DNA from: Selaginella moellendorffii | Lineage: Eukaryota > Plantae > Lycopodiophyta | Reading direction: 5' to 3' | Assembly (NCBI RefSeq): GCF_000143415.4 | Contig: NW_003314303.1 | Span: forward strand, 713,467-777,466 | Length of the DNA: 64,000 nucleotides | Shown: piece by piece, positions 9,743 to 37,867 of the stretch | How the letters are laid out: every line of letters starts with the position of its first letter | How positions within the stretch are numbered: position 1 is the first letter of the stretch | Notes under the pieces: generated by a model | What the model saw: the letters and a program-made list of their open reading frames with translations, nothing else | Told to the model about the DNA's origin: nothing | Database searches by the model: none | Position numbers and translations under genes: made by a program

Positions 9743-10099
9743 ACTTTCTGGGCTGCTGGATCCAGCCAATTGCAGCCATCTGATGGGGGCATAACTGTAA
9801 AGGGGTTATTTTTTTAACCACGTGTTTGCAAATAATCACACTAATGTTTGCTCCTGGGCAATGGGAGGTGGCCAAGCTGCGTGGGGCGGGAGAGGAAGGT
9901 GCAGCGACGCATGTTGCATGCATGTGTTCTGTAGCAGATCTTGCTGGAGTTCCAGCCCTCCTGCTGGAGCTCACGGAAAAGATCCAGCACCAATCAATGC
10001 AATTTGGGATTGTGGGCAATGCTAGTGATCACTGCTGTCCACGAGATTAGATTTGGATCTGGCATGGCGTGGAAGATCATGATTGCAATTGCAGGGCCA

Positions 10100-11510
10100 A
10101 GATGGCTGAATTGGATGTAGCTCGTGAGGATGGTGTTCCAGAACACTGTGCTACTCTCTCGTGCTAGAGAGGAGTCTTGTGCAAATGCCTATTCAAGGCC
10201 AATGCTGCGATCATGGCATTGTAGCTCAATTTGAGAGAAGATCTGCCACACCTCCACGACATCCACAATCCGGGCATACGCATCGATGATCACTCTGATC
10301 GCACTATGGTCCTAACTCTCCGGCTCAAGCGATCAAACAGCACCCTGGCTTCCTTGATCCTCCCGGACTGAGCGTAAGCCTTACCTAGTCCTCGAGCATG
10401 GAGATTTTGGAGTTGGGTGATGCAAATCGATCAAAGAGGAGCTTGGCCTGCTCAATCCTGCCACCAAATGCAAGACCTGTGACCATGGCATTGATTGTCA
10501 GGGCGTTGCGATGGGGCATCAGACCAAAGAGGAGCTGTGCCTCATCAAGATTGCTGCTCCTCATGTAGCCAGAGATGATTGCATTCCATGCCACCACAAC
10601 ACACCGCAGCATGGAATTGAAGAGTGCACATCTGGCCCCATGTGGCGTGGGTGGAGATCATCAATGTCTACAATACTGTGTCTCGATCAGGCATGGAATC
10701 AAACACTTTTCTAGCATTGCCCACTCAATCACTTGTGAGGTAGGCAGCTAGGGAGTGAGTTCCACACGACCGTGTTGTGCAACTCTATGGAATCAAACAA
10801 AATCTTTGTGTCCATGGCCAGTCCCTACTGTGCATAAGCTCTGATCATTGTGCTCCAGGAGACAGGGTTTCTCTGTGGCATCACGGTGAAGAGAGCTTGA
10901 GCCTCACAGATATGGCCGTGAGAACCCATTGCTGTGATCATCAGGTTGTGTCTCTGAAAGGGATTCTCTAAAATATCATGATTGCATTGTTGATCCTCCC
11001 AGACTCTGCAATCGCACCCAGGAGGCTGTTCCACGAGCAGCAGTCCCACTCGGGCATCTCAAAGAAAACAATGGCCATTTGCCCATTCGTGGCATTTGCC
11101 ATATTCATAGAGTTCCAAGAGGCTATAGTTCGTAATGGCATAGAATCAAATAGATCCTTCACATTTTCTAAATCATTTCTTGATGCCAAAACTGATATCA
11201 TTGTTGTATATGACAAAACATCTCACTCTGGCATCTCATTGAAGAGGGCACTAGCTTCCTCCAGATGCCAGTTTTGGGCATAGCACAAAAGCATCATGTT
11301 CCAGCAGATGACGTCTCTATGTGCCAGTGCAAGAAAAACAGTTTTCATTTTATCAACCATTCTGCAATCTGCATAGGCAGTGATCATTGTTATCCATGAC
11401 ACGAGACTATAGAAAAGCATCCCATCAAACAATCACCATGCCTCCAACAGATCCCCAGCCACGGCAATTGCTGCAATAGCAACATTCCAGCTGATAAGAT
11501 TCTTCACTAG
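10100..11510 (-). pseudogene. Pentatricopeptide-repeat gene remnant
   Basis: Repeated FDxMPxRxVVSWNxMIxAYAQ-type units broken by stops and frameshifts; boundaries approximate. Confidence 0.8.
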
Positions 11511-20345: not shown

Positions 20346-22247
20346 TGTGAGACACAAAATCCCTAGGCCCCAAAGTGGAGCCGCAAGGGTGCCATGTGGT
20401 GGTGGCCGAAGCGAAAACCAAACGAGCGTAACACGTTTGGACTAAAAGCTCTAATTTGAAAGGTTGAGAGCGGGAGTGGAAATCCCAACAAAGTGCTCGA
20501 GGAACGAGCACGAAGCGAGCAATAAGCGAGGCTCCAAAAAGGGACCCAAAAGGACCAACACATGACACGTGGAAGAGTCTGAGATGGACCTGAGTTGGAG
20601 TCCGAAGTGGAGTCCGCGAAGGACCCCGAGATGGAGTCCGAAGTGGAGTCCGAGAAGGACCCCAAGATGGAGTCTGAGGTGGACCCTAGATGGAGTCCGA
20701 GATGGATCCAAGATTGAGTCCGAGACGGACTCGAGATGGAGTCCGAGATGGACCCGAGATAGAGTCCGAGATGGAGTCCAAGGTGGAGTTTGAGGTGGAC
20801 CCAAGATGGACCTGAAATGGAGTCCGAGATGGAGTCCGAGATGGACACGAGATGGAGTCTGAGATAGACCCGAGATGGAGTCCGAGATGGACCCGAGATG
20901 GAGTCCGAGATGGACCCGAGATGGAGTCCGAGATGGACCCAAGATGGACACGAGATGGAGTCCAAGATGGAGTCCGAGATGGACCCGAGATGGAGTCCAA
21001 GATGGAGTCCGAGATGGACCCGAGATGGAGTCCGAAGTTGAGACCGAGATTGAGACCTAGACCGGGACCGAGACCGGGACCGAGATCGGGACCGAGACTG
21101 AGACCGAGGCCGAGGCCGAGACCGAGCCCGAGGCCGAGGCCGAGACCGAGCCCGAGTCCGAGTCCGAGTCCGAGTCCGAGTCCGAGTCCGAGTCCGAGTC
21201 TGAGTCCGAGTCCGAGTCCGAGTTCGAGTCCAAGTCCAAGTTCGAATGTGAGAGGGTGAAAGCCCAAAGCATTTGTCCCCCAGACCCTAGGGGGTTTGGT
21301 GAGCTCCAAAAGTATAGTGAGGGGGAGGACTGCAATGGAGCCAGTTTGGCCAGGAAAGGCTAGTTTGGCCCAGGAAGGCCAGACCCAGTGTTGGGTGATG
21401 AGCTGCCCACTGGGAAGTCCAAGACTAGAGTGAACACAAGCCGACAAGCGGGGTAGCTTGGTAAAGTGTTCAAGAGCCGGCTCTAGTTCCCCCAGGAGAT
21501 CGACTGGCCGATGCTCCCAATCCAAGTGTGGGTGGCACTACCTACTTGGATACCTAGTGTGGCTCAACAAAACCTCACTCTAAGCCCATGGCTAGAGCAC
21601 CCAAAGGCAGAAGGCGAGGAGAGTACCCATGAGGCCCGCGTAGGGCCACGGTGTTCCGAAATGTTGTCCCAAAGTCCCAGACTGTGGAAAGGAAAAGGAG
21701 TAGCCCTCTGGTGTGGTGACAAAGGACACGGTCACCTAATGAGGAAGTCCCAGAGGACAGTTGGACTTAGAGGTCGAGTCTGTGGGCCTTGATCTAGTGG
21801 CAGTGTTGGTGAACACGGCCATTGATAGAGAGGGACTTGGTGGGGACCGAAAAAGAGAAATTGGGGAAGGTTATTCCCCAAGTCTGCGAGCATCCTAAGG
21901 ATGCTAAAGAGTGGATCTGGGATGATCACTCATGAATGGATGGCCTAGTCTATGAGAGACAGGATTGCAATGTAGGTGGTGTTGGACCACTGATGTGACC
22001 AAGGTGAATAGGTATGGCCTTAACGTAACGGGCTGATATGTCGGTGGTACCTTAGGGTGTCGATCATGGGATCGAACACGGGGAGCACTTGGACCAAGTG
22101 CTAAGTTGAGTGGCATGGATGCCATTCTCGGGGCTAGCAAGCCCCAAGTCCTGAGTTGGACTTATGGAGGTTGTGAATGAGACTCCTCCAAGTGGTCAGA
22201 GGTGTGGTTAAGTGACTAAAGTAGAATGGAAAAATTAGTCACTTACA
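20346..22247. mobile_element. 1.9-kb solo LTR inserted in element B pol
   Basis: TGTGAG...CTTACA termini, TSD GCTAT/GTTAT; removing it restores the B frame (HEIARSFVVYPF). Confidence 0.8.
20575..21240. repeat. Hexamer-based tandem array (GAGTCC/GAGATG/GACCC variants) inside solo LTR
   Basis: Long run of gagtccgagatg/ggacccgagatg units ending in pure (gagtcc)n; related arrays at 16300-16560 and 38150-38400 in LTRs of element A. Confidence 0.9.
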
Positions 22248-23399
22248 GTTATCTCATGCAAGCATGTCACCAACTCCAAAGCGTTAATCAATGGAGTATC
22301 ACTGTTGTTTGTCCCAACAATCTCTTTTATAGTGCCACCAACTTCAATATGCAGAACATTACGCTCCCAATCGATCCCTGGCTTCCTGTCATAAAACCAT
22401 TCCTTCCCAAGAATAACGTCTGTGCGACCAAGATCCATAACCTGGAATGAAGGATGGTCAAGAATCCCCTGAAACGTCAAAGGAACACTCGGAGCCTATT
22501 CACCATAAACACGAGTGTTATGTCCATCTGCCATAACCACCTCATAGATTACTGAACTTTTTTCCACAAGCAAACCAAGTTTCTTCACCACCTTGGAGCT
22601 TAAAAAGTTGTGTGTAGCACTTGGATCGAAAAGAATACTAACAGCATTACCCTGAATGTCCCCTTTGGCCTTCACAAGTTGATTGCGCATAGAACTATTA
22701 ATCTCTATAGAAGCTCTATTTCGTTAAAGTGGGATTTATTCAGTAAAATGGGACTAGGTACAAATTTTCAAGTATTTGAAAATGACGTGAAATTATATGT
22801 TTTTTGTCCAGGGGCTAGACATATCTGGGGCATGGTGACTAGCGCGGTGACTTTGTGTCCAGACTGAGTCCATCTGGTTGTATAAAAAATCTCATTGTCA
22901 AGGTGAACAAGCCGAATCTGAAGCTAAAGAAGAGCGATGGCATGCGCGCACACACTATTTGTTTGTTCATTGAGCGTGTGGTGAGCTTTCCAAGATGAAC
23001 GTCATTCCTATTAGCCAGACATATAACTTAATGGTGAGAACATTTAGATATTATTCAATGTTATCTTTTTCTAACGAATCTAATTGTGAAGGTGTAGCAA
23101 GAGGCATTGCTAGTCTGGAGAAGTCATTTAACTCATTTGACCCTTAGTGTATTTTCATGAAACTAAATAACATTCATATTATTAAGGAATTTCTCTAGTA
23201 CCTTTTTTTTACGACATAGAGGCTTGCATTTCTTTCAAAGGTGATTTAGTAAAAGGCCTGAGGGCACATGCCATTCTATTTCTCAGACCGGTATTAAGAT
23301 ATACTAGTGCAAAGGGCCACATGCCATCACGCCTCCTCTGATTCAGATTCGGATTGTTCACCTTGAAATAAAATACATTAGAAACTTAGTAAAGGAATA

Positions 23400-26300
23400 T
23401 TAATGAATCTCACCTTGAACCCGGGTTATGAATGCTCTTGCTGCATCTCTTGCATGGTCTGGCAAGGTGATGGTGGCACTCTGCTTCCGCATCCAACCAT
23501 GCACAACATTATCCACCGATATGCTCATGCTGGGATCCCTTGGATTCAGCACCCATCTCTTTTCTAGGCAATCCTTCGTATATCCGGAACTTGGCTTGAA
23601 CCACTCCACAGTTACATTGAAGGAGTTAGTTTCCGCGTCCTCCTCTGCATCAGTGATGCAGCGCCCCACCCATATCATTTGTTTTTTATTACTGGGTCTG
23701 ACAAGCACGACCATTCCTTTGCAGACCTGTACTGGATTGAATGCTGAATCCGGCTTCTTGTTCCTCGGCCCACAATAGTGATCCTCAACATCGTTATCTG
23801 TCATTGCATTTCCAGAGGACATTGTTCCGCTACTATCTGGTGCTCTGGGTTCTGGCCAAAAGGACTCTTCCAATTCTTCATATACAACCGGCCCATTTTG
23901 GATAGCAGATATAATCTTCTCCCAGTATTCGAGCAAAGGCTTGCACCTCTTAAAATAGGATTCTCCACCAAACACCAACCCCCTCTTCCAGAAGGCAATA
24001 TGCTATCTAATCCCGGCCACTATACTTTCCTGGTCTTTGAGTCCATCCGGGTGCATCGGCCGTGGGGAACCCTGAGGAATCATAGGTTCCCCAATTATGG
24101 GATCTCTCTTGAAGAGTTCAATGCCATCCACTGGCAGCCACACTGTGTCCCATTCTCTCATCTTGTACCTCATCACTGGAGCACCGTCACGCATGCTGAA
24201 ATGAAACTGAAGAGGCTTGGAGTGGCCAATCAGCGTTTCGGATCCGTCCCTGATGTAGCCTCTTACAAACCCCTTAAAGTCTGGAACCTCTGTCACAAGT
24301 GCAGCTTCAACAGTGCCTTTGATGCAATTTTGGAATTCATCGTAGAGTTGTGGGAGGGTGAGGACATTGGATCGCCGGAGGGACTCTGCCAGGTGACTGA
24401 ACATGGCATCGACGTCTTCATGAGTGTGCCCAACCATGAGAAAGCCAAGTGTAACCGTTTCAAATATGCCTTTGGCAACAAGCATCGCCAAGTACGCGAA
24501 GACGTACATGTTTTTGTTCTCACTGCCAGCATTGTCTGTTTGGAGCAGAAGATGGGGTGGAAGGCCACATCGGCCGCAAGAACTTCCTTGAGATTCTGCT
24601 TCGTTTGGATGAGGCTGTGCATTCACCGGGTGACCAGCCTCGTCGTAATGGCATGAGGCCTCACGTGATAACCCTACAATCTGACGGCCAACATATTCAC
24701 TAGGATGGCATGGGGCCCCACGCGATACTGCAAGCCTTTGCTCCTCCTCCAGCTGAACCCTGTATGGGGTTCGATCGACAAGGGCCTTATACAAGGGTTG
24801 GCCGTTCAGCTCAGTCTGCGCACTTTGCAGAGACCTTAAGTGTTTTGCTAAGGACGCAATCATCATGTTTGCACCCCCGCCACCCCATAGAGGTACAAAG
24901 AAGTTCCCATAGTTCTGGGCACCATGCCCATGAGCGATTATGCCAAACAGAGACACAGGCAGCTGCATGGATGAAGAGATTGCCTTGGGGGCAGGATTGA
25001 GTCGAGGTAAGCACGTCTTTTTCTGATCCATTTTGTCGTGGATGATGCAGAGGTAAGAGTCAGGTCTCTCCATGGAGAGAATCCTGTTATGATAATATGC
25101 AGTCCTGCAGCTTCTCTGCTCGATGTTGTGGTCGAGCCGCCTTCTAACCAACGTCTCTCGCTCTTGAGCGCTGCAAGAATTCTTCGACAAAGCCATTTTG
25201 ATAGCAGTGCACTCGTCACACTTTGAAAAGCTGGAGTACTTTCCTATACTCACATCCCTGAACCTGTTGCTCCACAATCTACTAAATCTAGACTGGCTCA
25301 GCTTCCTGTAGCCATTACTCTGGAGTTCCCGATTCACATCTTCCAATATGGCCCCCTTGGTATACATGGAAGGGAGAACTCGTTGGGTGTCTCGTGTTCC
25401 ATCTTCCAAGAGGCGGGTTTTATGTGGTTGCTGCTCGCTACATGTCTCGACAAACCTCTTGAAGATTGCCTCTCCATATACAACATGACCCCTGGTTTTG
25501 TGCGTACCGTCGTTCCCATGGACTGCCTGTTGAACCCTTTGTTCCTCGAACTCAGTTTTGATTCTGTAGAATGTGGTTCGAGGGACTCCATAAATGATTC
25601 TCCATGCCTTCATGCAGACCAAACCCCTCTGGAAGACCATGCCCCCCACCTGATGTTCTGAAGCATCAACAGATGACCGTAATGCCTCATACACAAAATT
25701 GCAAGCTGCCTTCCAGGACAATGTCTTGTATCTTGCTCTCTCCTCTTCAATAGCATCCCAATCAGCATGTTGACAGCACCTCCTCTTGCAACAAGCAACT
25801 GTCGAGACCATTCGAACCTCCATCGCCATTTTCTGCCTTTTCAGTTCGTTGCTCAGATCCCTTTGGCTGCGCTGTAGGAAGGTGTACTTTCTTTTCCCAT
25901 GAAGAGATGTTCTGTCATCAGTTGTAGTGGTGTTTGATTGTGAATCCTTCACATTCTCAAACACTAAATGCCTCAATTTCCACCGCACAATGCTTCCAAT
26001 AGTCAGACTGTTTTCTTCTGTGTCAACAACCTCTAAAATTGCAACTCCAATATCATCCCAGCCCAATTCTTGATTAGCAACCGCATCTCTTGGATCGACA
26101 ACTGTGGCTAAGCCCTCAGCTACCACCTCCCCCTCGGGGTTGTTTAGAAACACCTTTGCCTGAATCCATGTAGCACGGTTCTTAAGATCCACGGAGGGAA
26201 CATGCGTCGCACTTGTGCTGTCCCCAACATCTGCTTTCTTTTGAAGATTTTTCAAGGCAACAACAACATTTACCCCGACGACCATCTCTCCTCGTTCAAT

Positions 26301-26468
26301 AGCGACCACATTCCCATCGAAGACAGTCTCTACTGATACAGCAGCATTGCCTTCCCCAAGCCTTTGACAGTGTATAACAAAGTTCCGATCCATAGACACA
26401 AGGGTCCCTTTTGCAACTCTCTTCCCACCATTCAAAATGTAAACCTTTTCCCCAACCCTGAAGGCCAT
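23400..26468 (-). CDS. DDE transposase (Sola1-like), ~1020 codons with one nonsense codon at 24003-24005
   Basis: FSKCDEC, IIHDKMD, LQTDNAGSENKN, GFLMVGHTHEDVDAMFS motifs; ORF 23400-23978 continues in the same frame after TAG; extra small terminal exons likely. Confidence 0.8.
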
Positions 26469-26835
26469 TCTGAAAGTGCAGAAAAGAAGTTAAGACCATA
26501 CAAAAAATGATTGGAGAATGGCCTAAATCATAACATACCAAACAACCTCAATAGCATGAGGCCACATGCCATTATTCAAACATGCTATTGACACCCACAT
26601 GAAATTTCGCATTCACAAAATTGGCATGAGGCCTCATGCCATCTTGATATACACACAGCTGCAGGCAAGTAAAAACATACATGACAATACGCTAGCCATG
26701 AAATTGCAAGGGCCCAAGATGGCATGTGGCCTCATGCCATTTCTAAATGTGGTCCTAAACCATTCCATGGTGAACATACCAGGAAGCACAAGTGCCGAAT
26801 ATCAAGAGGAAGCGGTAGCCACACCAAAGACAGTG

Positions 26836-26960
26836 CCGCTCGCAACACCGCAACTACTCGTAGCGCCGCTCGCAACACCGCAACTGCTCGTAGCGCCGCT
26901 CGCACAAACTGCCACTCGCATAAACTGCCGCTCGCAATGGCGCTCGCAATGCCGCAACCG
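26836..26960. repeat. GC-rich ~30-bp tandem repeat upstream of transposase
   Basis: gccgctcgcaacaccgcaactRctcgtagc twice plus degenerate copies. Confidence 0.8.
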
Positions 26961-27276
26961 CTTGTAGACGCATAAACCACAGCTCACAACGCCGCTTACA
27001 CAAGCAGCGCTCACTGCGCTCAGCGGAACCAAGAACACGGCGCACAAAAATGATAGACCTAGGAATGAGTTCGAGAATTCAAAAATAACACACGCTTGAA
27101 CGTCACATCAAATCCTCTGACAAACCAGATCTTATGATTCCTCTGACAAATTTCAAACTGAGTAGCTTCTAGACTTTGCTGTCGGAGGTTGAACTTTGTC
27201 ACATCATGTCCTTGCCTCGATCCAGCTGTGCCATGTCAGTGATTCGAACTTTGCCATGCCATGTCAGCGATCCGCG

Positions 27277-28664
27277 CCAAGATTATTCGCCGTGTAAAGG
27301 AATAATTATGCTGTGTGTGTACGTCCATTTATGGCAATATAATGCCACATGCCATTCAAAGAATAATGCTAGTCGAGCATCTTTTGGTGCATTTTTGGGT
27401 TCAAAATTGCATGAGCCCACACGCTATAAAGTTTACCTGTACCAAAAATAGAAACAGCTTTATTTACTTGGGAATTTATATGGCTGAGGCATTTTTAAAC
27501 TTACAAACACATGCCCTACTTACATTCCTTTGGTTGCTTAAAATTCAAAAATATTATAAACCTTTCTTTTTGCATTTTCAATGTTTTCAATTATGGTTTT
27601 TGATTTTTGCAGGACCAGCCTAGTAATCTATTTGCATCCCGTCATGTTTATAGCTAGCTTTCGTTTGTCCCCTTCGCTAGCCTGAGATACATCTGCTCGG
27701 CATCTGCCTCTTACAGCATTTGCCCAGAAAGGGCATCTTTCTTCACGCAGCATTTGCCACATGTTTAGGGTTTAGGGTTTAGGGTTTAGGGTTTAGCAAT
27801 TCAGTAGCTTGATAAACATGCAAATACAGAACTTGATGCAAAATCCTTTGATATGTCACAATGCCCCTAGGACCATAAACACATTTCAATAGAGAGGGTC
27901 CTTTCATTTCATAACTCCTTACGTAGATCTTGGTGAAACCAGAGTTAGTGAAGTTGGTTTCTTGTGATCCCGCATCTGATTGTGATGTCCCTTTGCAGTG
28001 TCGATGGAAAGGTCAATGCACACCAAACTGTAGAATCTTGGAGCAAAATAACGGTCGGATCTATGGCAAATGCCCCTGAAACATTGTAAGGCTCGTGTGG
28101 TCTCATGTGGTGTCCGATCGAGATGCTTCTTTGCAGGGTCATCAAGAAGGACATTGTATACCATTCTGTAAAATCTAGTTGCGATCTAACGGTTGGATCT
28201 CCAGGAAACTCAAAACAATCTCGCGCGTGTTAGAATATTCTAGGAATATACTCCTATGTGCTCCAAGATTATTCGCCGTGTAAAGGAATAATTATGCTGT
28301 GTCATTTATGGCAATATAAGGCCACACGCCATTCAAAGAATAATGCTAGTCGAGCATTTTTTGGTGCATTTTTTGGTTCAAAATTGCATGAGCCCACACG
28401 CTATAAAGTTTACCTGTACCAAAAATAGAAACAGCTTTATTTACTTGGGAATTTAAGTGGTTGAGGCATTTTTAAACTTACAAACACATGCCCTACTTAC
28501 ATTCCTTTGGTTGCTTACATTCCTTTGGTTGCTAGCTTTCGTTTGTCCCCTTCACTAGCCTGAGATACATCTGCTCGGCATCTGCCTCTTACAGCATTTG
28601 CCCAGAAAGGGCATCTTTCTTCACGCAGCATTTGCCACATGTTTAGGGTTTAGGGTTTAGGGTT
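27277..28664 (+). repeat. Direct duplication (27277-27796 and 28263-28664), each copy ending in plant telomeric repeat (TTTAGGG)n
   Basis: Both blocks start ccaagattattcgccgtgtaaagg and end catttgccacatg(tttaggg)n; tracts at 27764-27796 and 28642-28664, the latter running into the N gap 28665-29437. Confidence 0.9.
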
Positions 28665-29569
28665 NNNNNNNNNNNNNNNNNNNNNNNNNNNNNNNNNNNN
28701 NNNNNNNNNNNNNNNNNNNNNNNNNNNNNNNNNNNNNNNNNNNNNNNNNNNNNNNNNNNNNNNNNNNNNNNNNNNNNNNNNNNNNNNNNNNNNNNNNNNN
28801 NNNNNNNNNNNNNNNNNNNNNNNNNNNNNNNNNNNNNNNNNNNNNNNNNNNNNNNNNNNNNNNNNNNNNNNNNNNNNNNNNNNNNNNNNNNNNNNNNNNN
28901 NNNNNNNNNNNNNNNNNNNNNNNNNNNNNNNNNNNNNNNNNNNNNNNNNNNNNNNNNNNNNNNNNNNNNNNNNNNNNNNNNNNNNNNNNNNNNNNNNNNN
29001 NNNNNNNNNNNNNNNNNNNNNNNNNNNNNNNNNNNNNNNNNNNNNNNNNNNNNNNNNNNNNNNNNNNNNNNNNNNNNNNNNNNNNNNNNNNNNNNNNNNN
29101 NNNNNNNNNNNNNNNNNNNNNNNNNNNNNNNNNNNNNNNNNNNNNNNNNNNNNNNNNNNNNNNNNNNNNNNNNNNNNNNNNNNNNNNNNNNNNNNNNNNN
29201 NNNNNNNNNNNNNNNNNNNNNNNNNNNNNNNNNNNNNNNNNNNNNNNNNNNNNNNNNNNNNNNNNNNNNNNNNNNNNNNNNNNNNNNNNNNNNNNNNNNN
29301 NNNNNNNNNNNNNNNNNNNNNNNNNNNNNNNNNNNNNNNNNNNNNNNNNNNNNNNNNNNNNNNNNNNNNNNNNNNNNNNNNNNNNNNNNNNNNNNNNNNN
29401 NNNNNNNNNNNNNNNNNNNNNNNNNNNNNNNNNNNNNGGATTCACGCATGCGCGCGCCGATCCAGAAATTAATGGTGGCGCCCAAGTCCGAGAAATGATG
29501 ACGTGGCGGGATTACCAACCGTCGTGACATTTCGCGCGTGTGAGGTTAGGTTTTGCATTTTGCTTCGTA

Positions 29570-29760
29570 CTCGCGCTCGCACACTCGCGCTCGCATCGCG
29601 CTCCCACTCGCGCTCGCATCGCGCTCCCACTCGCGCTCGCATCGCGCTCCCACTCGCGCTCGCATCGCGCTCCCACTCGCGCTCCCACTTCTCTACAGGT
29701 TTCTCGTGTGCATCGGCGTCCACTCGCGCTCGCATCGCGCTCGTGTGCATCGGCGTCCAC
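29570..29760. repeat. GC-rich 22-bp tandem repeat upstream of accessory gene
   Basis: cactcgcgctcgcatcgcgctc unit repeated ~5 times then degenerate. Confidence 0.85.
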
Positions 29761-30183
29761 TTCAAGACACACCCAGTTTGTAACTTCGCCGCCAACTCCG
29801 CCGCCCACTCCGGCACCCACACGCAGCCCACTTGGCGTCCCGGGAGATTTCAGCGCCACTCTCCAACTGTAAGTGGCAGAGTAGCCTTGCTGCTACAATC
29901 CGCTGCACACACAGTGCACATTCGCCAGCGAGTCCGGTTGTCACGCCTCCATTCGGCTTCAAATGGTAAGTCTTTTAGGCCAAGTAGAAAATGGCATGAG
30001 GCCACATGCCATTCAGTAGCAACATTGGCATGCACCGATTGGGCTCTCGAGTGCAGTCCGGTTACAGATGGCGTGTAGCCTCACGCCATCTTAGGATGCA
30101 GCCTCAAGACATCTGATGCAGTGGTGAATGGCGTGTGGCCTCACGTTATTTCCAGCTACTAGCTTTTCATCTGTCAGCTCTAA

Positions 30184-33100
30184 TTGTTGTGCATTTCTGA
30201 ACAGGCGAGGAATTGCGTTCTTCTTCCAGCCACTGTCAATGTGGATGTAGAGAAGGGGGAGGAGCTCACCAGTTGGACTTTCGGGATAGAAGGCGAGGAT
30301 CTGAGGCTGTACAACACAGATGGTGGGAGAAAAGAATGCATGGGGATCCTCATCCAAGTGACAGACACTCCATGCAGTTCCATGCAAGAATATGGACTGG
30401 CACTTGTGGTAGAGACAGCGTCTGCCTTCAAGATCCACCTTGCACATCCTAGCGGCTTCCCGGAGGGGGGCAGCGGCTATGAGGAATTCCTAGAGGGAGC
30501 TAGGGAGAGGTTGTCCAGGAGGCCCACAATTTCAAAGACGCTGCGGGTCTATGAAGATCACATGGAATCCACGGACCTCACCTACGGCGATGTTCAAAAA
30601 CTATATTCCAACATTGAGCCGTTGAGAGTGACTCCAGTTCGCGAAGCAAAGGGGAAGGGGGTCGATCTGGAAACTACCTCAAAGCAGAAAAGGGTGGTCA
30701 AGCTCAAGCCGACGTCCGACTCTCCTGCTCCAAAAAAGAAGCTACTCAGTGATGCCATTGCCTCGGGTTCGAACACTACACCCACCAAAAAGAAGAGCCG
30801 CAAAGAGCAGAAAGAGCAAGAAGAGGCAGCAAAAATCGTCGCAGATAATAGTACTTGTTACTATTCCAACAATGTATATACAATCGACGTGAGCCGTATC
30901 GACATCCAAAGCAAATACAACCACAGGCTAGTATCTGATGAGTGGGTGGAGAAACTGAAGCAGAAGATGCTGGCAAGTCCAGTAACACCCGACATCGCAG
31001 ACGTGATCCCCTACTACCGAACAATGAAGGGCGAGATGAGGTTTCCAGACTTGATCAATAGGAAGGTGTTGGACGATCAGAACATCCGGTTCTATGCCGT
31101 CTCCGGGCAGCATTCTAGCTTGGCGATGCAAGAGATAGTTGTGGATATTATGGTGGGCGAGGAGGTGAAGAAAGTCTTCAAGACAAGAGTTGTCCGCCTG
31201 ATAAAAGGCAACTCGCCCCTCCGATCTATCATATACATCTCCCACGCGCAGAATGTCAAGCAAGAAACGTGCTACAAATCGGGTCTGCACGAGACATTGG
31301 CACGAACACGGAAGCTCTGGGTTCAACTGAAGAAGCCACAAAAACCAGGACAAGGACGTGCACTAGCAACTAGCGCCTGGCAGGTAAGCCTCGTTGCATG
31401 TGGCATAGCATGTGGCCTCACGCCATTTCCATTGCAGGAATTCTCGAGTCTTCTCTCGAAAACACTGGGGGTCAATGACACACTCAGCATCCATAACATT
31501 CTACTCGCGACAAAAGTTGTTTTTGACAAATGGGTAGATGTGCTGAGGAGGTACCATGACGGGGAGTTGCCAAACTCAATGGGTGTGGAGGACGGCCGGA
31601 AGCCCAATGATTTGAAGCTCAACGCCTTGCGTTTCTCGCGGTCTCTAGACGACGACGACCTTCTGACAGTGGCTAATGCTCTTCTACGTGGTGAGGTAAT
31701 CTTCAACAAGACCAAAATGACTCTCGGCCATATTGTGACATACGAGGACTTGTGCACGACTCTGAGAGCTCGTGCGCTATTGAAGGATTGGATCTTTGAG
31801 CAAGTGGCCGTGGAGAGGGTGAGCATCGACACCACGCAAGAGATGATGGAAGCGCTGGAGTTGTCAAATGAAGACATCGACGAGTACGTGAAGGGGGCCC
31901 CCAAGTTCATCGATCTGCTGCGGGATGCCACGAAAAGTAAAGCTGAGAAGTTGGATCAGTATCCAAATTTCATTAAGATTGATGTCGACCGCCGGCTTTA
32001 GAAACAGCTCGACCCCGCAGCAGAGGCCTATCGAGAACCTTACCGGGTATACTTGAATTCGGATGAGGATCAAAGGTGGAGGAGCATCGTTTCCCGCGGA
32101 GATGAGCAGATCAAGAACATCTTTTGTGTGATGGACTTCACAAACAAGGAGATCACTCATGCAGACGAAGTCAGCTCCATCATTGACTTAATGGTGGGAC
32201 TTGCGGAGGTGGAATCTTCAGTCCACTATATGATCTACGACTCCGAATCCTATCACAAGTTCTGGAAGGTCTTGAACGAGGTGAAGGCTCGGTTGAAAGG
32301 CAAGGAGATGCGGGAGATCCATGGGATAATGGCTAAGAAGAAGATACCGACGAATGTCCGCATCTTCACACTCGCCCTTGTTATTGGTCCTGCAGCAGAG
32401 TGGGACTGGAGTGACTTCCCAGCTTCGTTCGACAAGGCCAATCGAATTGATCTGAGGGAGGTCAATTTACCCGTGCCTGAGGAACTGAAGACGGCTATGG
32501 AGCTTTCGAATCCAAAGAAAGCTCCAGGTGCAGCATGGGAAATGCTCAGCTGGGTCTTCAACGCAATAGCGGGTGGGTCATCTGCTTCCGACTCCAAGGG
32601 CAAATGCGTTGTCGAGTACAACTGCGGCGGACTATTCTTTCGAGCCGCACTACTCAAGGGTGTCCCTTGTGTTGCGGTGACAAACTCCATTGAAGAGATG
32701 ACTTCAATGGAGCATATAATTACAGTTGCCAAAGAAAAACAGTATCTTCTCTGCGAACCTGGTGAGTACACACTTTAAGTTTAAATGTTATCTCACAAGC
32801 TCTGTATGCAGGAGCATGGCCACCCCCAGATGCTGAAACGGCGTTAACAGCTACTTTTGAAGATACCCATGTTGGGCCGAGCTCACAACCTGCACAAGGT
32901 AAGGTCACGTGAGGCCTCACGCCATTTTGATTATAGATCGTTGTGAATATTTAGACACGAGGACTGAAAAGCGCACTGGTGGCGCATCGAAGAAGGACAA
33001 ACAGAAAAGCAATAGGAAAAAAGGAGGTACAAATTATATTTGCAATGGCGTGTGGTCTCATGCCATTCCTTGCAGGAGAAACTTCTTCAAAGGCAAAACA

Positions 33101-35585
33101 GGCAAGCACCAGCCAAGCTCAAACTGACAGTGGTCATAAAAAGCGAAAGCACGTTGGACAGTCGTCGAGATCAGAGGCGTTTGATTCGAAAAGGAAGAAG
33201 GGCAACGAAAAGATGATAGGTAATGCCTCGCGGTTATGGCGTGTGTGCTCATGCCATTCATTGCAGATCAAGGGCTGAGTGAAAGCAGGCAGTCACCACC
33301 TCATGACTCAGATTCCTATGGCGGACTCCCCTTCCCCAATCTCAATGGAGAGGTACAATGGATGAGGGAAGCTTTTCAAGGCAGGGCCACGTTTTTCTCA
33401 TCTCGTCGTCTTCGAAGGGTGCAAGAACGTGCAGAAACCATGTTAAGACAGTCGGGTGAGGATACGGTCCTAGGTCACGCACTAAAACAAGCTATGGATG
33501 TCTTGTATTTTGAGATGGAGACTCGGCCAGATGATTTTCCCAAGATGGTCCTGGAAGAACAAGCCATCCAGCCTGAGCAGCCTATGGAAGAAATGCAGGA
33601 GGGGGATGAGGAGCCAGAGAAAGATAATGAGCAAGAAGAGCAGAAGGACGAAGAGGAGGACAAAGAAGAGGAGGACAAAGAAGAGGAGGACGAAGAGGAC
33701 TTGGATGGTCCTCACAATGGTCACGATCACAATAACGACGACGACGATGATGACGACGATGGCCAGCCTGAGGTGGCCAAAGAGCGGCGGAGGAAGGTCA
33801 TACAAGACAAACCATCAGGTAAATAATAATACATCCATTCCTAACCTTTTACCATTTCTAACATTGTCCATGTAGGTCGCAGAGCAAATGGTAAGTAGAG
33901 ATTATTCAGTTGAATTTACAAACTCTAGCCTTTAGTGTCGAGGAAGGATAGTGCCAAGCAAGGGTCGAAACGTATGTCCAATCCTTCAGAATCAGCAGTG
34001 CGCTCAAGTGATATCGGTCCTAGTTCCTCAATAGCAGTTGATGGTAAATACAGTATAGTCGATTCAATGTGCTAATGAGTTTGTTTTTAGTAGCACGGGA
34101 GGATACCATCTCAATCGAAGGGAGATATTTGGACATGCATATGGATCCGCCAGTGGACTCTACTTGGCTGCAAGAGTCATCAGAGCTGGTGGAGGCTACT
34201 ATCCATATCAACGCCAAGCAAACTGACCACGCTCCACTTGATGCTGCCCATACCACTGAGTCAATCTTGTCCACGTATCCAACTGACGGTGACCAGGCGC
34301 CATTGGACCCACATGAGGCCGCCCCAGCCGCCGAGCCGGTCGTATCCTCATTTCCAACGGACTCAACGTGTGCCCAATCGTCTGACTACGCGCCGTTGGA
34401 ACCTCCCTACACCGCCCCTGCTGCTTGTTCGGTCATGTCCACTTTGCCAACGGAGGCACCAGCTGAAATGGCGTGTGATCACACGCCATCGGAACCACCC
34501 CATGCCACTGTTGAGCCAGTTGTACCAGAGTCTACAGCTGAAATGGCATGTGCCCACACGCCATCGGATGCGATTGACCCCACATTGCAGAGGAGAGTAT
34601 TTCCGCCCTTCACGTTTCCTCGACCAAAACCCTCTCAACGACCATCGGGAGCAACATTCGCTAATATTGTAGATGGTAAAATTGACTTGTACCATTTTTT
34701 ATGCTGACGCATTTCATTTCAGAGTCACGGCGAAGGTACTGTATCGTTTTTGATCTGAACGGTGTCCTTTTCTCCCATGAGCGTGGCTCGTCCTCGAATG
34801 TCATTGCACCCTCCAAAGCCTGCGGTCGCAAGTTGGTCAAAAGAGACAGATTCACATTAATCACACGGGAGAAACTGCGGGATCTAATAATGACCATGCG
34901 ACACTTAAAACAGAGGGCCGGGTTCAATTTGCAATTGGGAGTTTGGACATCCATGATGCGCCACAATGCATTAACGTTGCTACAGATGATGCACGATCAG
35001 ACGCGAGTAATATTACCATTTGACTTTCTCCTAACGCAGGAGGATTGCTTGACTATGGTCCATGTGAGGGGTAGCAAGCCCATCTTCGTCAAGCCAGAGG
35101 CTGTAGTGATGAACCGGACTGCTAGCTCAAGTGAAATCCTCATCATCGATGACTCGCCGATTAAAACTGCAGCGAACACGCACACATATGCAGTGCACCC
35201 CATCTCTTGCAGTATGGAAACTAGGGAGAAGAAACCGTATGTTCTGGGGGACCTTGCAAAACGGCTTGGAGCGATGGTGATAGAGAACCGGCCAGTCCAG
35301 GAGGTGGCTGCAGAAATCAACCAAATGGCAGATGGAACGGTATATCAGAAGCCATTTGATCGGACAGACACCAGTCATCATTTATGGCATGTATATTGTC
35401 TAGCCAAGCACTATCCGCATCTCCATAATCTGCTCAACCGGATGGGTTCTTCGACCACTGAACATGAGCGTGGACGTATTAGAGAAGAGATGGCATTACT
35501 ATTGGGTTTAAATCCTGATAGTGTGGAGAGTGATGAAATTCCAAGATTATTGTATAGGCGTTGGAGGCAAAAAATAACAGTCTGA
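30184..35585 (+). CDS. Large multi-exon transposon accessory gene: ParB-like region, degenerate N6/N4-MTase-like region, K-rich/acidic/P-rich linkers, C-terminal HAD (FCP1/NIF-like) domain; one nonsense codon at 31999-32001
   Basis: ORFs 30184-32001 and 32053-32778 share a frame; GT-AG introns (31384-31437, 32899-32954, 33027-33075, 33220-33266 and others) chain the exons; motifs YTIDVSRIDI..YNHRL..FYAVSGQHSSLAM, CVVEYNCGGLFFRAALLKGVPCVAV, IVFDLNGVL/VWTS/FVKP/ILIIDDSPIK; 5' start uncertain. Confidence 0.65.
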
Positions 35586-36940
35586 GATGGCATGTATTTA
35601 TTTAAAAATGTAACTTATTATGGCATGGTGTTCCATGCAATTGTATTAATATTAAAAGACAATTCTTTGAGAGGATTTGCATTATACTAGAAGTGTTACA
35701 GCATGTTATTGGAAGTCTACGAAGTTGTTTTATTAATAATGGGAAAGTAAAGATTGAATGGGGACTTGGGCTCCACCTAGACTCGGAGCAACTGAGCCAA
35801 TATTAAAAGGATGGAAAGAAATTGGACGACGATGACAAGGAGAAGAGAGAGGTGAAGCAGTGGCAGGGGGAGGAGAAGTGATTGAGTAGACATTTCCTTG
35901 TTTAAAATAAAATGGCATGTGCCTCAATGCAGTTGAATTTTGTTATATTTATATACTATATAAAGGTTTGGAAACCTTATTTTACAAGTGGGATAATGAC
36001 AATTCCCACTTTAACGAAATAGAGCTTATAGAGTTGATACGAACTCAAGACTTAGATTCTTGAATTTTTGCCACAGGGTGTGGAAGAGCCATCACAGCAG
36101 ATGCCTGAACTATATCCACAATGGATTCCACAACATGCACCTTAGCATTCTTTGATCCCTTCATAAGAGGACAATCCTTGCCATGATGTTCAGCCTTGTG
36201 ACAACAAAAAAAATTGCCCTCCACCTTGTCTTTCTCTCGTTGGTCTAACCGATGTCTTTTTGCCTTATTACCATCTCCACTCTTCATGCTTTATTACCAT
36301 CTCCACTCTTCAAGCTATGACGAAACAACAGCCGTTTCTTCCCTGAAGATGAAGTATTGGTGGGTTGGTCATCACATGGACTACCCGGGAGACCATCCTT
36401 TTGACCAGAGTTGACCAAGTTGACCAACGGTTTAGGCGAAAAGATTTGAGCCTTAGTGATAGCACCAGTCAATGTTGCTGGAAAATCCTTCTTGACCTTT
36501 TGCTGCACATCCACTAAGCTCAATCCTTTAATGAAACAGTGCACCTTTAACAGCTCATTATAGGTGCCCGTGAGACTAAGGCAAAGATCACGGAACTTGC
36601 GGGCATACCCATCTAAAGACAAAGTCCCTTGCCGGATCTCTAACAGCTGGTTCACGAGATTAACCTCTTCAAACTTCTTGACAAACGAAGTGTGGAAAAC
36701 CTTTGTCAAATCTGTCTAAGAAGTTGGCTTCGGATTATCTTTAATGTAGTTCTTCCATCATGAAGAAGCATGGCCCATAAGCTTCGTTACAAAGAAATCT
36801 ATCTTCACCTTATCCTCACAAAGATTGTGAGACCAACAACTTTCCCACAATTCCAACCAAGAATCAACTTCTTGACTATCACAAACATCTGATGAAGATT
36901 TCCATTCCATGATACCATAATCCTTGGCATGCTTGACATA

Positions 36941-37867
36941 GAGTAAAGATTGCATTGCTACTCAAAGGCATCGAGCACGATGATCTCCCCTAGGACCTGA
37001 AGAACAAGGGCCAGCTCCTGCTCGAATCCAATCCAATCCACTGTAAGCAACCAAAGGGAACGACTTGAGAGACGATCCATGGGGTTCAAATATAGAGGGA
37101 AAGGGCCCATGAATAAGAGTGCACCCCCTTTTCCAATCGGTTAAGGGTCTTGGGATATTTGGGGTTAAGCGTCCTTGGGTTTGAATAGTACTGGGCTAGA
37201 TGACCTCCCAGGAAGTCCAAACTCAGAAGTTTACATTTGGTATCGGAGTGGTTTTGGGTCCAACTCTGTTGGTTAGTTAGGGGAATCACACCACATGTTG
37301 ATTGACATCTGATTGACATCTAGCTGGTCCAGTTTGCTCCCACTGGGCTTGACCCGAGGGGTAGGGTGTCAAGAGAGCGGGGCTCTTGGGAGAGCTGCGG
37401 CTCTCAGCTTCCGTTCACGAGGGCATGAATTTGTAGGGAAGTGTGGTGGATTGTAAGCAACCAAAGGCAACGACTTAAGAGACGATCCATGGGGTTCAAA
37501 TATAGAGGGAAAGGGCCCATGAATAAGAGTGCACCCCCTTTTCCAATCGGTTAAGGGTCTTGGGATATTTGGGGTTAAGCGTTCTTGGGTTTGAATAGTA
37601 CTGGGCTGGGTGACCTCCCAGGAAGTCCAAACTCAGGAGTTTACATCCACAAGAAGGTCTTGGTTCTCATCCACAATGGGAAGCCCATTGTGGAATCAAT
37701 CATTATTGTTTAGTACATCGACAAGGTCTAGTGCGGAGAATCTCCATTGCTGCCTTCAGACGCTCTCCTCCGTGCAGACGCTCTCCTCCGTGCAGAGTGT
37801 CACTTCTGGACGGATTTCATTGACAAGAAGGTATGCGTCTCTAGAGCCATACATCCCTGATGTGATC
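36941..37867 (+). pseudogene. Type-c tau GST fragment in inverted orientation, interrupted by TRIM and abutting element B LTR
   Basis: Reverse-complement match to 54023-54305 (RVKIALLLKGIEHDDLP..ESNPIH/KK..). Confidence 0.85.
37042..37645 (+). mobile_element. Cassandra-type TRIM: LTRs 37042-37235 and 37452-37645 containing 5S rRNA-derived segment
   Basis: TG..CA 194-bp LTRs, PBS TGGTATCGGAG, purine tract before LTR2, TSD TCCAC; LTR segment gttaagcgttcttggg..aatagtactgggctgggtgacctcccaggaagtcc matches 5S box A-C region. Confidence 0.9.

Follow-up and report, generated by a model that had tools for sequence, protein, structure and literature searches.

A probable two-gene Sola1 transposon family in Selaginella moellendorffii: an inactive 13.3-kb copy with a ParB-like accessory gene and element-wide palindromes

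The window analysed here is a stretch of 64,000 nucleotides from the lycophyte Selaginella moellendorffii (NCBI RefSeq assembly GCF_000143415.4, contig NW_003314303.1, positions 713,467 to 777,466 of the forward strand), and all positions below are counted from its first letter. At 22711-36027 lies a transposon of 13,317 bp, of which an estimated 773 are N, with a transposase gene on the minus strand and a long spliced gene, here denoted the accessory gene, on the plus strand. The unit has inserted cleanly into the gag-protease region of a degenerate Ty3/gypsy element. Its ends are 24-bp terminal inverted repeats (TIRs) that match each other perfectly and are flanked by a 4-bp target-site duplication (TSD), ATAG; the TIR sequence, AAGCTCTATTTCGTTAAAGTGGGA, occurs exactly twice in the window, where none is expected by chance. 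The rebuilt empty site is a palindrome, CTCTATAGAG. Joining the flanks, with the element and one ATAG deleted, gives a continuous minus-strand gypsy frame across ...KS*VRINSIEINSSMRNQLVKAKG..., which runs from a gag with a CCHC zinc knuckle to the retropepsin motif FDPSATHNF. The host retroelement (21800-22710 and 36032-37200, minus strand) is degenerate too, its gag-protease being interrupted by several in-frame stops, indicating that the transposon landed in a retroelement that was already dead.

The transposase gene comprises about 1,022 codons and is apparently intronless. An open reading frame (ORF) of 821 amino acids (24003-26468, minus strand) continues in frame past a single TAG (24003-24005) to position 23400, and its product scores 146.2 bits (E 1.1e-42) for the Pfam family DUF7869 (PF25273), whose gathering threshold is 26. 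Six relatives of 902-1,074 amino acids, 35-38% identical to it, are colinear across the stop position, where their residue varies, indicating that the TAG is a premature stop within one ORF. The transposase shares its candidate catalytic D, D and D/E motifs with these six relatives; IIHDKMDQ, QTDNAGSENKN and GHTHEDVD are intact and hardly vary across the set, and the protein carries the motifs DNAGSENKN and FLMVGHTHEDVD. The block LQTDNAGSENKN...FLMVGHTHEDVDAMFS, 56 residues that we compared by eye with the sequence in the supplement of PMC12477816, is identical at 28/56 positions to the block VDNTVAENKN...MMVGHTH...D of the curated transposase of Sola1-1_Ec32. The best blastp match of the latter protein is Sola1-1_PPa of Repbase (PMC12477816), the Physcomitrella element and likewise a land-plant Sola1, and both the Ectocarpus and the Selaginella elements have 4-bp TSDs. 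Because of these three points, the sequence supports assignment of the element to the Sola1-type TIR transposons.

Residues 1-180 of the transposase (26200-26468, minus strand) comprise two small domains in tandem that weakly resemble TNP1/En-Spm; the match to PF03017 (E 0.028) is a lead only, and the pair may be a DNA- or chromatin-binding module. One unit of the pair is deleted in a second copy of the element, contig L001, which is described below. We rejected an intron at 24640-24730, around two palindromes of the transposase gene, as no in-frame GT-AG pair fits and the homologues have a variable linker there. The text 'DUF7869' occurred in none of the papers searched, and sequence searches of the PDB with the transposase and with the two accessory exons that encode the ParB-like and HAD domains returned nothing informative.

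On the plus strand, a frame-keeping search found a path through eight canonical GT-AG introns of 47-177 nt, which joins nine exons into a reading frame of 4,878 nt and 1,625 codons. This length is a minimum, and the true start probably lies in a short exon upstream of 30184. Splice sites read directly from the DNA include G/GTGAGT...TGCAG/G at 32762-32811, AG/GTAAGG...TTGCAG/G at 32899-33075 and AG/GTAATG...TTGCAG/A at 33220-33266 (slashes mark the boundaries). The frame contains a sole internal stop, a TAG at 31999-32001. All three other sequencing runs that cover the site (X19, X1 and X3) read C at 31999, indicating that CAG is the family state at this codon.

An earlier sequence-only reading of this DNA had described perfect 24-bp TIRs with an ATAG duplication in a palindromic target, a gypsy gag-protease frame restored by excision, a Sola-like transposase on the minus strand with one visible TAG, and a spliced plus-strand gene of more than 5 kb, also with one TAG. 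The ends, the joined flanks, the transposase homology to curated Sola1-1_Ec32, the TAG at 24003-24005 and the nine-exon path agree with that description, and the CAG in the other runs bears out its proposal that the accessory stop arose by a CAG to TAG change. Its labels for the accessory product, ParB-like, methyltransferase-like and HAD, held in two of three cases: the first is supported by the fold and the last by Pfam, whereas the methyltransferase label gained neither profile nor fold support.

The N-terminal domain of the accessory product was modelled with AlphaFold2 (AF2) from the translation of 30781-31998 together with 19 distant relatives, giving a mean predicted local distance difference test score (pLDDT) of 81.8. 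The top Foldseek matches of the model were Noc, ParB, KorB, PadC and sulfiredoxin (E 5e-4, probability 1.0), and the VIA all-against-all alignment of model residues 25-164 gave Z scores of 9.7 to PadC, 9.1 to KorB, 8.9 to the N-terminal part of pNOB8 ParB and 7.5 to sulfiredoxin. At the level of the model, these comparisons confirm a ParB/Srx fold. For the 605-aa exon product, an exhaustive HMMER search returned 22 weak matches, the best with E 2.3e-9, and an Atlas lead to DUF3723 scored 0.94, with recognition below threshold.

The methylase-like region that follows is a language-model lead, resembling PF01555 clusters with scores of 0.86-0.88. A stretch within it, VVEYNCGG...VAVTNSIEE, resembles methylase motifs I and II. 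A DPPY-type tetrapeptide is absent from the region: MDFT stands at its candidate place, and LESG or LELG in relatives. Modelled with AF2, the region reached a pLDDT of 48, too low for use. If the region is homologous to methylases at all, its sequence predicts a catalytically dead methylase.

The last accessory exon matches PF03031 with 27.0 bits against a cut-off of 21.8 (E 4.2e-6), which identifies a C-terminal HAD phosphatase-like domain of the FCP1/NIF type. FCP1-homology clusters score 0.96 against this domain (34725-35582) in the language-model comparison, with 209 shared features. The nearest look-alikes in that comparison are mostly clusters from Nucleocytoviricota, the giant viruses (0.95-0.96), which we note as a lead only.

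The element also contains 19 copies of a 22-bp palindrome. We scanned the whole window and 20 shuffles of it with the consensus ATGGCRTGDGGCCHCAYGCCAT, allowing up to 4 mismatches; 19/19 sites fell inside the element, with none in the other 50.7 kb and none in the shuffles. The palindromes are present in both halves of the element, and most stand in the spacer between the two genes, in the 5' region or untranslated region (UTR), or in accessory introns, where they usually lie 7-10 nt upstream of a ...TTGCAG 3' splice site. Palindrome-bearing introns and 5' regions are found at 31384-31437, 32899-33075, 33220-33266 and 29966-30183, and the 177-nt intron has one palindrome close to each end. Four further sites (24648, 24705, 34468 and 34543) lie in variable or low-complexity coding stretches. 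Either the palindromes came to lie in positions free of coding constraint, or the introns originated together with the palindrome. The array of binding sites and the telomeric tracts described in the sequence-only reading correspond to element-specific palindromes and TTTAGGG repeats, the palindromes being putative binding sites. The coordinates of all features are collected in Table 1.

Table 1. Features of the Sola1-type element and its surroundings (positions in the 64-kb window; TSD, target-site duplication; TIR, terminal inverted repeat)
Feature	Positions	Strand	Basis or remark
Left TSD, ATAG	22707-22710		Same 4 bp at 36028-36031
Left 24-bp TIR	22711-22734	+	0 mismatches to right TIR
19 copies of 22-bp palindrome, consensus as in text	23253-35641		Consensus scan
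Sola1/DUF7869 transposase gene	23400-26468	-	ORF and profile match
Repeat-rich spacer between divergent genes	26469-30183		Repeats read directly
Minisatellites in spacer	26835-26955		
Tandem duplication of about 0.9-1.0 kb, 97-99% identical	27274-27796 and 28260-28664		Each copy ends in (TTTAGGG)n
TTTAGGG tracts	27763-27796 and 28641-28664		Read directly
Assembly gap (N, length estimated)	28665-29437		In tandemly repeated spacer, outside any reading frame
23-bp minisatellite, 4.9 copies, upstream of accessory gene	29571-29684		
Palindrome-bearing short introns or 5' UTR of accessory gene	29966-30183		
Accessory gene, at least 1,625 codons, 9 exons	30184-35585	+	Frame-consistent GT-AG path
Accessory exons 1-5	30184-31383, 31438-32761, 32812-32898, 33076-33219, 33267-33818	+	Frame-keeping search
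Accessory exons 6-9	33876-33890, 33936-34043, 34091-34675, 34723-35585	+	Frame-keeping search
ParB/Srx-fold domain, motif AVSGQHS	30853-31272	+	AF2 model and fold comparison
Helical region without clear match	after 31272 to about 31998	+	Model of the ParB part
Possible decayed N6/N4 DNA-methyltransferase remnant	32002-32761	+	Language-model lead
Acidic low-complexity linker of accessory protein	between possible methylase remnant and HAD domain	+	
C-terminal FCP1/NIF-type HAD phosphatase-like domain, motif FDLNGVL	34723-35585	+	Pfam PF03031
Right 24-bp TIR	36004-36027	-	0 mismatches to left TIR
Right TSD, ATAG	36028-36031		Read directly

A closely comparable element has been published from a brown alga. 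Sola1-1_Ec32 of Ectocarpus sp. 7 is 21.5 kb long, with imperfect TIRs of 282 bp, AACCG termini and 4-bp TSDs, and its opposite-strand gene encodes a protein of 1,104 amino acids that joins a ParB-like domain to a predicted functional N4C/N6A methyltransferase; in the authors' proposal, this protein binds and modifies the very transposon that encodes it (PMC12477816, Genome Biol 2025). Judging from the gene model and the fold, the Selaginella element has the opposite-strand gene with an N-terminal ParB-like domain of this published two-gene Sola1 layout, and the two elements further share giant size (more than 10 kb), the length of the TSDs and a homologous transposase core. They differ in that the Selaginella TIRs are only 24 bp long with AAGCT termini and the host is a vascular plant. 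The accessory proteins, compared by description, differ as well: that of Selaginella has at least 1,625 amino acids and a methylase region that profiles do not recognise and that is without DPPY, and it ends in the FCP1/NIF-type HAD domain.

An analogous arrangement is known from a red alga, in which Plavaka (KDZ) elements of Bostrychia moritziana carry the accessory gene PAG3, encoding a ParB-like domain with a 2-oxoglutarate (2OG) oxygenase, beside inverted-repeat arrays; the protein is proposed to bind its own transposon (bioRxiv 10.1101/2025.02.11.637652). Like the Selaginella unit, these are giant DNA transposons; their accessory protein likewise joins an N-terminal ParB-like domain to an effector, and inverted repeats are its proposed sites. 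They differ in belonging to the KDZ superfamily and in the effector, a 2OG-dependent oxygenase, and their repeats form tandem arrays adjacent to the gene, whereas those of Selaginella are single palindromes across introns, UTRs and spacer. ParB-HTH-fused adenine methylases have also been described in chlorophytes (Iyer and Aravind). The bacterial ParB, Noc and KorB systems share with the Selaginella protein the N-terminal ParB/Srx fold, with Z scores of 8.9-9.7, and have short palindromes (parS) on the encoding replicon; the Selaginella protein is, in contrast, eukaryotic, spliced and multi-domain, has SGQHS in place of GxxRxxA and the CTP-binding arginines, shows no ParA partner, and its palindromes are putative sites.

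The sequence-only reading had found no counterpart of this architecture among described plant transposons, and had named an annotated family with the same organisation as a refutation. Sola1-1_Ec32 is such a family, already with two genes, and the Plavaka elements with PAG3 are analogous; since both the Ectocarpus layout and the Plavaka proposal have been published, neither the two-gene layout nor the idea of a ParB-like protein with its own binding sites is new. What is new in Selaginella is the vascular-plant host, the lack of a recognisable methylase, which seems to have decayed, the added FCP1-type domain, and the element-wide palindromes, which are dispersed and mostly intronic. The short TIRs and the telomere-repeat tracts in the spacer are further differences.

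Together, these data indicate that the unit is probably a slightly decayed copy, made non-autonomous by mutation, of a two-gene Sola1 family of the lycophyte, inserted in a Ty3/gypsy element. It does not represent a new class of element, and the copy studied here is, to judge from one premature TAG in each gene, inactive. Descriptions of transposon-encoded ParB-like proteins that may bind and modify the element carrying them are very recent and come from brown and red algae, and the Selaginella family would extend this idea to a vascular plant with a different effector make-up; as its putative binding sites are unusually clear, element-wide and mostly intronic, the proposal is directly testable.

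The two proteins may be pictured at work as follows. The intronless DDD transposase would excise and reinsert the element through the 24-bp TIRs, and the ParB-like protein would recognise the 22-bp palindromes in introns, UTRs and spacer, as ParB recognises parS. Bound there, it would bring its C-terminal effector domain to the chromatin or transcription machinery of the element itself. Palindrome binding with effector recruitment is a mechanism that we put forward tentatively. A more specific version is speculative and, in our estimate, rather improbable: a land-plant Sola1 would have rebuilt its ParB accessory protein, letting an algal-type methylase decay and adding an FCP1/carboxy-terminal domain (CTD)-phosphatase-like module, and the protein, landing on about 20 palindromes of its own element, would have as its target not DNA but the CTD of RNA polymerase II or some other phosphoprotein, controlling transcription or silencing of the element.

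The palindromes may also have another reader. In a serious alternative, which we hold to be possible though on the unlikely side, the element is the same and the palindromes are binding sites of the transposase, comparable to the subterminal TnpA motifs of CACTA/En-Spm elements, or a hitch-hiking micro-repeat, while the ParB-like protein does its work elsewhere or plays no sequence-specific part at these sites. The outermost palindromes do lie only about 550 bp from the left end and 390 bp from the right (23253, 23306 and 35620), the N-terminal tandem domain of the transposase could bind DNA, and the ParB-like domain lacks the canonical ParB motifs. However, the palindromes are spread over the whole 13 kb instead of being clustered at the ends, proteins of the ParB family typically bind palindromes, and the red-algal Plavaka elements pair ParB-like accessory genes with inverted-repeat arrays.

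Several observations weigh against the reading of the unit as a two-gene Sola1 element with a self-binding accessory protein. The conserved motif of the ParB-like family is F.AISGQHS, without the arginine-rich CTP-binding motif; the absence of the GxxRxxA arginines was judged from the alignment. For the methylase-like region, there was no match to PF01555 or to any other Pfam or NCBIfam family even at E 10. The catalytic motif of the HAD domain is DxNxV and not DxDx(T/V), the second Asp being replaced by Asn, and any phosphatase activity of the domain is putative. The HAD exon had one weak match in a word-index search, P0071, with 31% identity and the motif FDMNGVL; as this protein also has DMNGV, the Asn is not a private lesion of the copy studied here. 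Splice joints were sought in contigs of four runs over the accessory half, and none was found, all contigs being colinear with the DNA. A run search aimed at RNA returned no holder of the sequence that is on record as RNA, and some 13 assemblies that are probably transcriptomes of this species contained almost none of the words of the long exon, which fits silencing of the gene without proving it. The gap conceals part of the spacer. We infer the retention of both genes across the family from indirect evidence. No accessory homologue was found within 10 kb of two metagenomic Sola1-like loci, L002 and L003, whose transposases are 32-33% relatives, and the nearest relative of the ParB part, P0049, lies among host genes (ArfGap, VQ, SCAR) with no transposase within 10 kb.

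The last two observations would also suit a capture, in which the plus-strand gene is Pack-type cargo, a host gene acquired just once or recently, and plays no part in the life cycle of the element: P0049, 25-29% identical, sits among ordinary genes of a Selaginella assembly, and L002 and L003 are distant Sola1-like loci without an accessory gene. We consider a capture very unlikely. No close homologue of the ParB or the HAD part exists among the 15 billion proteins searched, the Ectocarpus Sola1 family has the same opposite-strand ParB-type gene, and in other samples the accessory half is present in very many copies of about 99% identity. In addition, element-specific palindromes stand in the accessory introns and in the transposase half alike, and the intronic palindromes speak for a long residence of the gene in the element rather than for a recent capture.

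P0049 itself is a 451-aa model at positions 10001-11425 of locus L004 (GCA_000143415.2 GL377575.1), similar at the 25-29% level to the helical and methyltransferase-like parts; on its sequence, it could be a domesticated or stranded derivative. No transposase was found within 10 kb of L004 or of L005, the other locus of a ParB-part relative. The gypsy element that flanks the transposon has an 81% nucleotide match to the P0049 locus on GCA_000143415.2, which, like the TTTAGGG repeats and introns of 47-60 nt, accords with a lycophyte genome.

Other copies of the element were found in sequencing data and protein archives. The Logan contig L001 (1-3577), from another sample, is a 97.6% identical deletion derivative with a different flank (...GAGCTT/AAAGAC..., the slash marking the junction). 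Its terminal 134 bp match the left end of the element at 100% identity, and it lacks the sequences corresponding to window positions 26216-26459 (the N-terminal 81 transposase codons) and 22845-24335 (the C-terminal part), indicating that non-autonomous deletion copies exist. The UniParc protein P0048 (764 amino acids) is 98% identical to the transposase. For the accessory half, 5.95 kb in length, one DNA run contains over 26,000 short contigs that are at least 90% identical to it, with 17-71 variant contigs per listed variable site, and a different sample yielded contigs of 2.0-2.8 kb with about 99% identity.

Comparison with these copies also reveals the direction of change. In 26 of the 40 best-supported differences the window has A/T and the other copies G/C (10 in CG, 9 in CHG and 7 in CHH contexts), and only 2/40 go in the opposite direction. 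Over the transposase half, C>T mutations are more numerous in L001 than in the window copy. The copy studied here and L001 are both decaying, as expected for methylated plant transposons.

The gap in the spacer raises the question of a chimera. It directly follows the second copy of the tandem duplication and is most simply a collapsed or unresolved spacer repeat; no reading frame crosses it, the transposase starting at 26468 and the plus-strand frame at 30184. That the 13.3-kb unit joins two copies or two elements across the gap is highly improbable, since, although a gap directly after a telomere-like tract and a 97-99% tandem duplication marks a typical place of assembly errors, the outer ends share one insertion site (TSD, perfect TIRs, restored host frame) and the same palindrome occurs in both halves, which indirectly argues that both sides belong to one insertion and that at most the content of the spacer is misrepresented.

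Upstream of the accessory gene, the 23-bp repeat differs in copy number between copies of the element: X19 has a 17-nt insertion, and contigs of X1 and X3 have loose ends at 29721-29735. Contigs of X1 contain many skips, which are rare non-canonical joints. Some contigs of the same run carry an inverted telomere-like insert (GGTTTAGGG...CCCTAAAC) between 30338 and 30425; for such inserts and for the telomere-type tracts of the spacer, telobox-type promoter elements and repair scars are both possibilities.

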